Positions 47,601 through 53,782 of a DNA stretch of 64,000 nucleotides are shown one piece after another. Each line of letters opens with the position of its first letter. Within the stretch, counting starts at the first letter, position 1. The notes beneath the pieces were generated by a model. The model saw only the letters and a program-made list of their open reading frames with translations, did no database searches and was not told the DNA's origin. Source of the stretch: Cyanophora paradoxa CCMP329. Taxonomy: Eukaryota > Plantae > Glaucophyta. The position numbers were made by a program, and so were the translations under genes. The stretch is from NCBI GenBank assembly GCA_004431415.1, contig QPMI01000428.1, positions 248,001-312,000 on the forward strand, given 5' to 3'.

Positions 47601-50600
47601 GAACTCGCGATCTACTGAAGCTGTTATCGGCACTGTCCCTCGCGAAAGCGAATAGCGGTATGCGACTGCATCGCCGGTCAGAACGGCGATGAAGTTGTTG
47701 CCTGCGAGCGCCCATATGCATGTCAGCCAATGCTCCAAGCCATCCTTTACGGCAATCGAACTCGAGCTATCTCACCGACAAACACGTCGTGAACGTCTAG
47801 CAAGAAGGTTCCCGCGTCGTTGTCTTGCTTCTGAAGGCAGCCCCTCTTGCGCTGCTGCTGCTTCGAATAGAAAACGAGCATTCCAGTTGTGCGGGGAAGG
47901 CATCCAATGCCAGTCACAACTTCTGCATCCTGGCATACAGGCTTTTCAAAGCCCATTCGCCTAAGGGCGAGTGCGTTCAACGGTTAAAACTCGAACTTCG
48001 ACCGCAATCGCAATCGGAACTTGGCAAGTCAAACGAACCTCACGTGCAATATGACGTATCCGTAATTATCAACAAAGAGTCGCAGCGAACTAAGATAGTA
48101 CGGCCAGAAGCTCGTTCTGTTTGCGGATCCGACGAGCGTGTCCTCCACAGAATATTGCAGCCTCATTTCCTTATCAAATACTTGGCAGAGGAGCTTTAGC
48201 TGAGGTGCACAATCGCGTGAGCAAACGCAATTTTTCAGCAGATTCGCATAAGCGATAACCTGAAAAGTCTCCGCCGGGTCGCTGACGAAAGGATTTAAGA
48301 TAGGCGAGCGGACGCTCGTAGGGGCAACAATGCCGGCCGCTGCAAGAAGAATGAACTCTCCGGAAGGCGAGACGGCCGAGAACGTCTGCGGACGACTTTA
48401 AGCACTGAACGTTTGCATCGTGTTTATGCATTATAGCGTGTGCTGTGGCCCACCTGGAAATCGAAGAATACTGAGCTGGCGAATTCCTTGATGGTGATCA
48501 CGTCTTCTGCTGGTGTAGAGGCTTTGAGTGCGCGCCTGCCCCCTGAGCCGGTTGCCTTGCCCGTCCAGATGAACTTTGCGCTGCTCTTCTCATTGATTTC
48601 CCGCAACGTCAACTCCGCCGTCGCAGCGAAATCTTCGAGTTTTTGCGCAGAAGAAGACCCCATGGCTTCAAGCCCGAACAGGAGTCCCAGTTCAGGATCC
48701 GTATTAGACGCCGAGACCGCGGCAGACACGCTGCAGACAGGTGATCATGAAAACGATATGAATATTTGCAAAAAGCGGAACGAAGCAAGATCTGTCCTAC
48801 CTGACAGCATCCTCGGCTCTTCCCCGCTGTAGAACCGCAACCTATCGACCATGATCATGTAATGATTGCGCTCCCGCTTGCATAGCGCTCACTTCTCTCT
48901 GCGCGTTTGCTTCGTTTCTCTGCAATATAGCCTCCGCTTCTTGCTTCTTGGCCTCAGCTTCTTGCTTCTTGGCTTCTGCTTCTTGCTTCTTGGCTTCCGC
49001 TTCTTGCTTTTTGGCCTCAGCTTCTTGCCTCTTTGCTTCTTCGCCCTGTCGTATGGCTTCTGCTTCCTGCCTCTTCGCCTCTGCTTCCTGTCTTTGGGCC
49101 TCAGCCTTCTGAGCTTCCGCCTCCGCTCTCTGCTGCGAGGCGACAACTGACGTTGAACGATCAGTATATATGACAACAATGGACTCGTGAAGGCGACACG
49201 GACTCGCAAAGACCACAGCAGTGATAGCAGCAGCGAGAATTACTGCGCAGCGAGAAGTTGAAGTGGTGTTAGTTGTTCCGAAGCCACATGTGCGCACCAG
49301 TTGCAATCGCCAAGAAGATAAGGGTCCACCGTCGCTTAGTTGATATTTCCTTCTTGAGGCTTTGCCGAACCAGAACCTAAAGCGTTCGATCTCAGCGCGC
49401 TCAGCTGTAGGATCAATCTTTTTCTAACTCACGATGTGCTCTGGGGTTGGCTTGTGCTTGGAAGCCGCGACTGATTTCAAATACGTCTGATCCGTTTCCT
49501 TCTGCGCTTGAAGTTTCAGGAGACCTGTATATGTCGACGTCGATCTCGCAAACAGTTAATGACCTCTGAGGGCTTGAAGCAGCACGTGAGAACCGCAGGT
49601 ATACGCAAGTAATTCGCGAATTCCATGCTGAGACCACGTGTGTAATCAGGATTGCATGCTCGAAGCCATCTGTATGCCTCTTCCAAGACAGATCCCTGTA
49701 GGAGGGACCCCTTGGAAGCCTCGAGCATATCTTTCGAAATCTAAATCAAACACGGATCCGGATAAAAAATAAATTAGAGAGGGCAACTCATGCATTAGTA
49801 AAAGGCGCAGACCGACTTATCATTAGAGGGATCGTAGTTTTCGTCCCATGGAGACTCAGTTTTGAGAGCTGCAGATTTCATGAATAGAAAGAAAAGTTCA
49901 ATCGACTTCGTTTGCGACTGACCGGCTTTGTACTTCATCGACTGTTGCGTCAAATACGTATGCAGACGTGAAAGTTCAGGGTACAACTGAGAGTACAGGA
50001 TAAGGGGTCGGATCGCAGATTTCTCAGCGCCGGATATCAATAAAGCTTGCCTGAATGGCGTCTTTGATATCTTTCCAATGTTTCACGAAAGCGTCGACGT
50101 CGAGATTCGCATCGTTGGAAATCATGGGTACCGCGTTTTGCGCATTGGGCTTGCTTTGGAATTCCTTCCATTTGCTCTGAAGAGGCGCGTAATAGTTCTC
50201 TATAAGCGGGTCGAGCTTTTGTGCTGGCAGCAGTCTTCCGACATATTCCTTGAAAACGCTGTCTAATCTCTCAGCTGTCTCCTTCTCGGACAAGTTTTTC
50301 TTCTTCGCCTCTGCATCAGCGGTCGCTTTCCTGGTATTCAGCTCCTGATCATTTTTCAGCGAATCCTTGAGATAGTTCGATAGAAGCGTCTTCAAATCAT
50401 GAAAATCGATTTTCTGCCTGCAGAGATGCTTTGAGCGAACGCCATCTGTGTGCAACTACCGCAAGAACCTTCGTACCATGCGAGAATAGCCTGCCAATAA
50501 ACCGAAGATACGTTTACGTAGTTGGTATAATTTCATCGCACCAGCGGCAAATGTGCATGCGTACCTGGAGATCCATTTTCTGTCGACTGCAGTAATATAT

Positions 50601-53600: not shown

Positions 53601-53782
53601 GCGCCGTTAAAGTGTCCTTGCGGGCGAACGAGATGAATCTGTGCAGGAGATATAGACGAGCGCCAGCATTGCGTGAACGTTAACGTTGTGAGGTCTGCAG
53701 CGCACGCATCGTGGTAGGGCACGTCTCGCTTGTGGCCATGGATGAGCTGAGATTTGAAGCCAGAGTCGTCATGTTTAGGCAT
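41644..53782 (-). CDS. Triple-TIR (TIR_2-type) transmembrane receptor-like protein: TIR-TIR-TIR, TM helix, heptad coiled-coil stalk, degenerate WD40/beta-propeller, FN3-like C-terminus
   Basis: Manual splicing. TIR1: MPKHDD..YHDA|FISFARKD..LKTTLERYGLS..AIEGSVCFIALATK|DWESDR|SCPEELEHAIKLKKRIVTVL. TIR2: YQDA|FLSFAR..LEDALEQYGLS|TWFD..ALEGSVCFVALAAN|GWDTNP|ACIQELEHAKRLRKRIVVVL. TIR3: EVMVS|YKR..LLNADGIE|TWVD..GIRGASVVLVLLTN|DWMQSTYC|LDE|LEYALRRARKRLVVVEL..AW|QKIDF. Then SRLHTYL..SLLQGSVLEEAYRWL, a TM helix at ~49140-49320, (QEAEAKK)n and DPELGLLFGLEA. WD40-like strands: AVSPSGEFILLAA, LVSGLESGKAVVHDI, LLISGDEEGN, AFSNDG. FN3-like LPPDTPYSCTATVTSSAGTS. Stop at 41644. Ectodomain exons are only partly resolved. 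Confidence 0.8.
48930..49130 (-). repeat. Coding 21-bp minisatellite (heptad QEAEAKK/QEAEAKR, about 9 units)
   Basis: Plus-strand units such as ttcttgcttcttggcctcagc; translation QRAEAEAQKAEAQRQEAEAKRQEAEAIRQGEEAKRQEAEAKKQEAEAKK... Confidence 0.9.

Follow-up and report, generated by a model that had tools for sequence, protein, structure and literature searches.

An intron-rich three-TIR gene of the glaucophyte Cyanophora paradoxa, probably remodelled from a bacterial one-TIR membrane protein

The minus strand of a 64,000-nucleotide stretch of the glaucophyte Cyanophora paradoxa CCMP329 (contig QPMI01000428.1, positions 248,001 to 312,000; the whole stretch is hereafter the window) carries an expressed gene with many introns; its mapped portion likely codes for the inner, triple-TIR half of a single-pass membrane protein, descended from a bacterial ancestor with one TIR and later remodelled. 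TIR domains connect bacterial, plant and animal immunity, and the route by which TIR receptors entered the eukaryotes is unsettled. Here a transcribed eukaryotic gene keeps the non-TIR frame of an abundant bacterial family, beyond the TIR fold alone, and would provide a traceable case in which a whole receptor scaffold crossed between domains of life and was then rebuilt with introns, micro-exons, tandem TIRs and a new outer domain.

The bacterial side of the comparison comes from scanning a collection of bacterial and archaeal genomes with a degenerate DNA pattern that encodes HTRLLxRAxEW; chance alone was estimated to give about 17 matches collection-wide. The scan yielded at least 120 bacterial loci, and 119 of the 121 open reading frames (ORFs) around the listed matches form one family, laid out as a TIR_2 domain, a linker, one membrane helix and then WD40 or CHASE2. 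In its members about 136 residues precede the HTRLL motif, and about 64 separate it from the membrane helix. The linker consensus (114 proteins) is ..ALDTDLDWVR.HTRLLVRA.EW....D.SLLLRG.DLEEAEQWL....KEP.PT.., and the post-helix consensus (93 proteins) is ..LLDTDPELALLLALEALQ..AEAEAALRQAL.., also given as ..LLDTDPELALLLALEAL.., followed by WD40 blades. The TIR signature of the 48 one-TIR members runs FISYSRKD, then C (46/48) xx E (48/48) [IL] x H (33/48) A (47/48), then KR[IL]v. Pfam recognises one TIR_2 with WD40 in L010, L020 and L117, three TIR_2 with WD40 in L006 (Desertifilum) and L024 (Scytolyngbya), and three TIR_2 with CHASE2 in L026 (Nodosilinea) and L061 (Allocoleopsis). Among the matches listed, nine proteins have three TIRs (eight labelled cyanobacterial, one unlabelled), 31 of 120 loci are cyanobacterial, and at least seven phyla are represented, including Cyanobacteriota, Chloroflexota, Actinomycetota, Verrucomicrobiota, Acidobacteriota and Pseudomonadota. 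An earlier reading of the window made from its letters alone (hereafter the sequence-only reading) had named just such a TIR_2-membrane-WD40 family with these motifs, cyanobacterial three-TIR forms included, and both exist. The family is very common in filamentous and soil bacteria and is uncharacterised; our search of the literature found no paper on it or on Cyanophora TIR proteins. In four of the three-TIR proteins CHASE2 replaces WD40 after the same linker (L026, L039, L061 and L095, with Pfam run on L026 and L061); L026, L061 and L095 are labelled cyanobacterial (L026 and L095 as Nodosilinea) and L039 is unlabelled. The bacterial frame exchanges one outer sensor for another, and the algal genes seem to do likewise.

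The algal gene was traced by mapping Logan contigs from four public runs (X1 to X4) of this organism onto positions 48400-53800, where they contain at least 31 splice joints whose plus-strand ends CT..AC correspond to minus-strand GT..AG introns of 51-96 nucleotides (nt); two introns, 52847-52930 and 49987-50050, are GC..AG. A model of 34 exons was built from 15 listed joints, the loose ends, the places of the contig pieces in their records and the binned depth, the lengths of the membrane-helix exons being set by the 187-nt record span of X3 contig 8. Translated exon by exon in phase, the frame starts with the ATG at 53782 and stays open to 48454, a span of 967 codons without a stop or frameshift over 33 junctions; further down, the gene ends in a terminal exon at about 41647-42510. 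The smallest exon, 50881-50888, encodes L-D together with the opening base of the glutamate codon in TIR3. The stretch 51625-51794 (170 nt) has stops in all three frames, and a stop between TIR2 and TIR3 was considered and dropped: X1, X2 and X4 have a piece of just 46 nt beside the joint 51793/51864, and in the bin 51658-51838 they cover 81 of 136 exon bases against 136 of 136 in X3, because of which we place a 55-nt intron there. Its removal connects the TIR2 frame to the TIR3 frame and leaves an open form in three runs. A side observation concerns exons 51321-51352 and 51054-51136, between which 184 nt (51137-51320) are skipped, twice the usual intron size; the transcript at this junction seems to hold two bases beyond a canonical splice product.

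All the motifs on which the sequence-only reading had relied are present on the minus strand in three-frame translation. Its T-W-(F/V)-D holds for TIR2 (TWFD) and TIR3 (TWVD) and fails for TIR1, which has ACCICES at that place, and the interval it gave for the gene, 49650-53782, takes in the TIRs and part of the linker and leaves part of the SLLQGSVLEEAYRWL exon, the KRR and helix, and the post-stalk motif below 49650. The N-terminus consists of 24 hydrophilic residues ahead of TIR1, without a signal peptide. TIR1 opens with VPYHD-a-FISFARKD, divided between exons 53706-53782 and 53563-53638, and TIR2 with IRYQD-a-FLSFARG, divided between 52653-52688 and 52443-52557, its TWFD lying in 52294-52361. 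TIR3, the most divergent of the three and a long branch in the tree described below, reads KEVMV.YKRLQTP.MKLVCKLLNADGIE TWVD ... IASGIRGASVVLVLLTN ... C-LD-ELEYALRRARKRLVVV, its last part also read as C-LD-ELEYALRRARKRLV, with TWVD at 51321-51352. A spacer of about 40 residues separates TIR1 from TIR2, and another lies between TIR2 and TIR3. All three retain the glutamate of the C..E motif (CPEELEHA, CIQELEHA, CLDELEYA), followed by KRIV or KRLV. Over 29 stop-free pieces Pfam gives two weak TIR_2 matches (E 0.045 and 0.1).

The intron map of these domains bears on their history. TIR1 and TIR2 have four introns at identical positions and in identical phases, the 16-nt micro-exon included, with lengths of 83, 96, 63 and 89 nt in TIR1 and 81, 82, 66 and 69 nt in TIR2; the two units (708 and 693 nt) appear as DNA repeats 1119-1120 nt apart, with 64% identity in exons and 39% in introns. 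TIR3 has at least three intron positions in common with them. Since the three TIRs share intron positions, they would have multiplied after intron gain, inside the eukaryote.

All 1826 six-frame pieces of the window were compared with a profile built from the 48 one-TIR bacterial proteins. Its top matches are the C-terminal exons of TIR1 and TIR2 (E 4.9e-4 and 8.4e-4), and the others fall in bacterial order, forming a colinear chain of 34.8 bits against a mean of 5.9 (standard deviation 1.7, maximum 12.2) in composition-preserving shuffles, none of 100 reaching it. Taken by exon, the bacterial frame profile gives 8.2 bits for 53563-53638 of TIR1 (profile positions 5-27), 18.8 bits for 52931-53101 of TIR1 (E 8.5e-5, positions 71-112), 16.5 bits for 51865-51998 of TIR2 (E 4.3e-4) and only 0.3-0.8 bits for each exon of TIR3. 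Beyond the TIRs, the exon with the DPEL motif scores 10.2-10.6 bits against the bacterial post-membrane profile (E 0.045), a level that none of 48 shuffles reaches (maximum 8.6), and 14.2 bits (E 0.003) against a profile of the actinobacterial type. The LLQG exon, 49564-49740, is the window's best match to the linker profile, exactly at the position of LLRG..L..AE.WL, with 10.2 bits against a profile of the Chloroflexota type; the KRR and helix give a weak colinear match of 3.5 bits at the place of the bacterial RRQR-plus-helix. As an ordered pair, linker and DPEL block reach 16.9 bits against a null of 8.2 +/- 2.0 (maximum 14.7). A pattern search from two TIR exons produced eight stretches, none of them confirmed, and a word search with the C-terminal exon of TIR1 gave no match. 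Judged by sequence comparison, the likeness to the bacterial frame is real and is statistically supported for the TIR and DPEL blocks, which together with the order of the blocks are homologous to the bacterial family.

A second Cyanophora protein strengthens the match. A HMMER search with exon 48454-48729 among 1.84 billion representatives returned one match at 40% identity, P0001, a 245-residue EukProt model of Cyanophora paradoxa that shares the DPEL block and also has a membrane helix and a coiled coil. P0001 aligns cleanly to the actinobacterial-type block (23.4 bits, E 4e-6) and scores 6.4 bits against the cyanobacterial type. The HMMER search returned no bacterial protein at E up to 1e-3, the 92-residue query being too short for the library, and a word search with P0001 residues 125-245 returned P0001 alone; neither search found a eukaryotic relative beyond P0001.

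Block by block, the window gene and the bacterial family follow one order: an N-terminal TIR with FIS.xRKD and C..E[IL].HA..KR[IL]V comes first, a basic stop-transfer leads into the single membrane helix, and beyond it stand a helical stalk, a DPEL..LL..EA block and a large C-terminal domain; the helix of the LL.G..L.EA..WL kind before the stop-transfer is a candidate common feature. They differ in that the algal gene has three TIRs where the bacterial frame has one, as well as a 122-residue insert, a linker longer by about 40 residues in which HTRLL.RA.EW is unrecognisable, a long KQEAEA coiled coil, an outer domain that is not WD40 or CHASE2 by Pfam, and at least 34 exons against an intronless ORF. 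The insert found no relatives in a word search with the 143-residue stop-free piece 50027-50455 or in Pfam, and the bacterial frame has no counterpart of it. Where the insert ends (DVDAFVKHWKDIKDAIQ), and likewise where the TIR3 exon ends (NKNAFEAACHMF), the sequence looks like the bacterial DDFEAAFEKLLEAL helix; this hints at an insertion within that helix, or a duplication of it, behind the 122-residue exon. In the linker, SRLHTYLTQQS lies at 49923-49986 and is separated from the SLLQGSVLEEAYRWL exon by an exon of 56 nt that the sequence-only reading had missed. VRQSLKKEISTKRR stands directly before a hydrophobic membrane helix of 23 residues, the stalk contains a tandem repeat of period 21 nt (48930-49102), and the post-stalk motif DPELGLLFGLEA is located at 48454-48730. 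Because the N-terminus is hydrophilic and KRR precedes the helix, the TIRs are placed in the cytosol, and the stalk and outer domain are probably outside.

Several results weigh against a bacterial ancestry for the whole frame. The exons and pieces of the window were searched singly, and most blocks therefore score weakly. The LLQG exon gives 6.3-7.0 bits (E 0.5-0.77), a score reached by 12 of 48 shuffles, and is not significant alone; the profile leaves LHTYL unaligned to HTRLL (0.7 bits, at another position), the 122-residue insert separates LHTYL from TIR3, and LLQG stands about 86 residues from the helix against about 44 in bacteria. With one long non-TIR profile the chain comes to 11.7 bits against a null of 8.5 +/- 2.0, and five of 100 shuffles reach it; this profile was dropped, as variable stalk length blurs its DPEL block. 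The ordered-pair test was devised after the matches were known, and the bacterial sample was fished with one motif and is hence biased. From 48744 to 41647, Pfam at E up to 1 recognises neither WD40 nor CHASE2 nor any further family in the stop-free pieces of the outer part, and the C-terminal WD40 supposed in the sequence-only reading is thus not recognisable.

On these grounds the gene might instead be a vertically inherited eukaryotic TIR protein whose stop-transfer, helix, coiled coil and short helical motifs came to resemble the bacterial frame by convergence, an explanation to which the insignificant linker match, the missing HTRLL and the marginal non-TIR chain all lend something. In the Protein Data Bank this bacterial TIR profile picks up TIRs of animals and plants too, and the fold on its own therefore tells little about origin. 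We nevertheless regard convergence as improbable: the DPEL block is significant in the window exon and strongly so in P0001, the family-specific TIR signature is common to both sides, all the blocks stand in the bacterial order, and P0001 aside no eukaryotic relative was seen among the 1.84 billion representatives.

The gene model has weak places of its own. The status of X1 to X4 as RNA is a guess, their libraries being without record; the junction 51321/51136 fits no GT..AG; and where X3 keeps the intron 51693-51747 an in-frame TAG (51733-51735) would end the protein after TIR2, a form that could yield a soluble two-TIR product. Furthermore, no annotated model in the public EukProt proteome of Cyanophora paradoxa contains the exon set of 48454-53782 (for exon 48454-48729 this follows from the HMMER search, which returned no self-match); the gene is unannotated or mis-modelled there. 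Together with a depth in X1 of 95 in the upstream contig and 8 in the downstream one, the kept intron, the non-canonical junction and the missing annotation would suit a locus without a three-TIR receptor, either decaying or making mainly a soluble two-TIR protein through intron retention, with the rest transcribed but not translated as one protein. Such a locus seems to us unlikely, as three of the four runs splice the intron, the spliced form stays open throughout the model, and contig depth is a poor measure of expression.

By comparison of sequences, bacterial origin is the best reading, and transfer followed by intron gain, as the sequence-only reading had proposed, is probably what took place: with the frame in at least seven bacterial phyla and, among eukaryotes, found only here and in P0001, a passage from bacteria to the alga is the most economical course. 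The donor is another matter. In a tree of 50 columns, TIR1 and TIR2 are sisters (Shimodaira-Hasegawa-like approximate likelihood ratio test, SH-aLRT, 95), and the cyanobacterial TIR-a, TIR-b and TIR-c each form a separate clade, from which it follows that the triple state arose separately in Cyanophora and in cyanobacteria; the tree lacks resolution and is without eukaryotic TIRs, and nesting among bacteria is not formally shown by it, a further point to be set against bacterial ancestry. Block scores disagree on the donor group, DPEL pointing to Actinomycetota, LLxG to Chloroflexota and the TIRs to none, and an assignment from TIR exon scores by phylum was dropped for want of a consistent preference. 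The donor bacterium cannot be named from these data, and a plastid-ancestor donor is not supported.

That last possibility, put forward in the sequence-only reading, would have the gene descend by endosymbiotic transfer from a three-TIR protein of the plastid's cyanobacterial ancestor. The cyanobacterial three-TIR members (among them L006, L024, L026, L061 and L095) do resemble the window gene in that the same linker and membrane helix follow three TIR_2 domains, the labelled three-TIR forms among the matches listed are all cyanobacterial, the family is common in cyanobacteria, and in the tree a group with weak support (SH-aLRT 80) unites TIR1 and TIR2 with the TIR-b and TIR-c clades of cyanobacteria. 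The resemblance does not extend to details, for in the window TIR1 and TIR2 are closest to each other and have introns in common, and the post-membrane block differs. The common intron positions and micro-exon speak for multiplication inside the eukaryote; the window TIRs do not match TIR-a, TIR-b and TIR-c in order, all three being best with TIR-b; the DPEL block scores -0.3 bits against the cyanobacterial type, and the DP motif occurs in six of nine actinobacterial members and in none of 21 cyanobacterial ones; and no homolog was seen in other eukaryotes by the HMMER search with the DPEL exon or the P0001 word search. The lower GC content that had been offered as a sign of origin is real (about 48-55% against 68-78% at 18-37 kb) and is void as an argument, with 52.4% in exons (58.7% at third codon positions) and 51.6% in introns; introns being as GC-poor as exons, low GC belongs to the region and is no remnant of a donor, and as a donor signature it was rejected. 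Descent from the plastid ancestor is thus very improbable, and neither the cyanobacterial three-TIR likeness nor the low GC is evidence of plastid origin.

Under transfer from a bacterium and later remodelling, an ancestor of Cyanophora would have taken up a one-TIR member of the family, the transferred gene would have gained introns, the TIR unit would then have been duplicated twice in tandem, and linker and stalk would have lengthened while the outer domain was replaced or diverged past recognition. The resulting protein is predicted to run from three TIRs through the 122-residue insert, a helical linker, KRR and helix, a coiled-coil stalk and the DPEL block to a large outer domain. By analogy with known TIR enzymes, a ligand on the outer domain may bring the cytosolic TIRs together, and the clustered TIRs may then cleave nicotinamide adenine dinucleotide (NAD) or make a nucleotide signal. 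In keeping with this, all three TIRs keep the helix C glutamate, after the W/C motif, of the NAD-cleaving TIRs (SARM1, AbTIR, plant TNL TIRs, bacterial Thoeris and CRISPR-associated Cat1 TIRs), and the TIR profile of the bacterial frame matches solved TIRs that include the NAD-cleaving Cat1, AbTIR and SARM1; unlike those enzymes, the window gene is without ARM/SAM, NB-ARC or another known activation module. Animal Toll-like receptors, for their part, are single-pass proteins with an outer sensing domain and a cytosolic TIR, an arrangement predicted here too, and the bacterial TIR profile matches the TIR domains of TLR1, TLR2 and TLR6. The window gene differs from them in its N-terminal TIRs and C-terminal sensor, in having three TIRs, in the want of any detected leucine-rich repeat and in its kept catalytic glutamate; animal Toll-like receptor TIRs are regarded as scaffolds. 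We tentatively suggest, with rather less confidence than doubt, that a glaucophyte lineage made its own family of 'Toll-like' receptors of reversed topology, with an outer sensor and inner TIRs, from a bacterial TIR-membrane sensor whose TIR was multiplied in one chain after intron gain. If true, a TIR surface receptor, putatively immune, would have been invented independently within the eukaryotes, out of a prokaryotic conflict protein and not from the animal or plant toolkits.

Table 1. Mapped parts of the three-TIR gene, in positions of the window
Feature	Position	Strand	Basis
N-terminal 34 exons of the gene	48454..53782	(-)	Splice joints in X1-X4 and stop-free exon-by-exon translation
TIR1, five exons including micro-exon 53190-53205	52931..53638	(-)	FISFARKD ... 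WESD ... CPEELEHAIKLKKRIV
TIR2, five exons including micro-exon 52068-52083	51865..52557	(-)	FLSFARG ... TWFD ... WDTN ... CIQELEHAKRLRKRIV
GT..AG intron of 55 nt between TIR2 and TIR3	51693..51747	(-)	Removed in X1, X2, X4; kept in X3
TIR3, eight exons including micro-exon 50881-50888	50645..51692	(-)	Joints, loose ends, depth tally, translation
Four very short exons	53190-53205 (16 nt), 52068-52083 (16 nt), 50881-50888 (8 nt), 50478-50489 (12 nt)	(-)	Canonical splice sites
Exon of 368 nt, 122-residue insert between TIR3 and linker, probably helical	50051..50418	(-)	Translation
Juxtamembrane linker, four exons	49923-49986, 49813-49868, 49564-49740, 49433-49501	(-)	LHTYL, SPWDEN, SLLQGSVLEEAYRWL, KETDQTYLKSVAASKHK
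Predicted stop-transfer KRR and one membrane helix WTLIFLAIATVILAAAITAVVFA	49298-49376 and 49204-49242	(-)	Translation; VRQS-x7-KRR
Coiled-coil stalk, KQEAEA-type 7-residue repeats	48801..49146 (exons 48891-49146, 48801-48839)	(-)	Translation and tandem repeat
Post-stalk (DPEL) block TDPELGLLFGLEAM ... AELTLREI and start of outer domain	48454..48730	(-)	Bacterial post-membrane profile

Positions 18000-37000 of the window, the GC-rich block already mentioned, hold many overlapping long open frames on both strands, six of which were tested and gave no Pfam match. GC jumps at about 38-42 kb, where the receptor gene ends, and just below its 3' end a long open frame on the plus strand (39226-40257) contains an F-box-like domain (Pfam E 6.7e-7).

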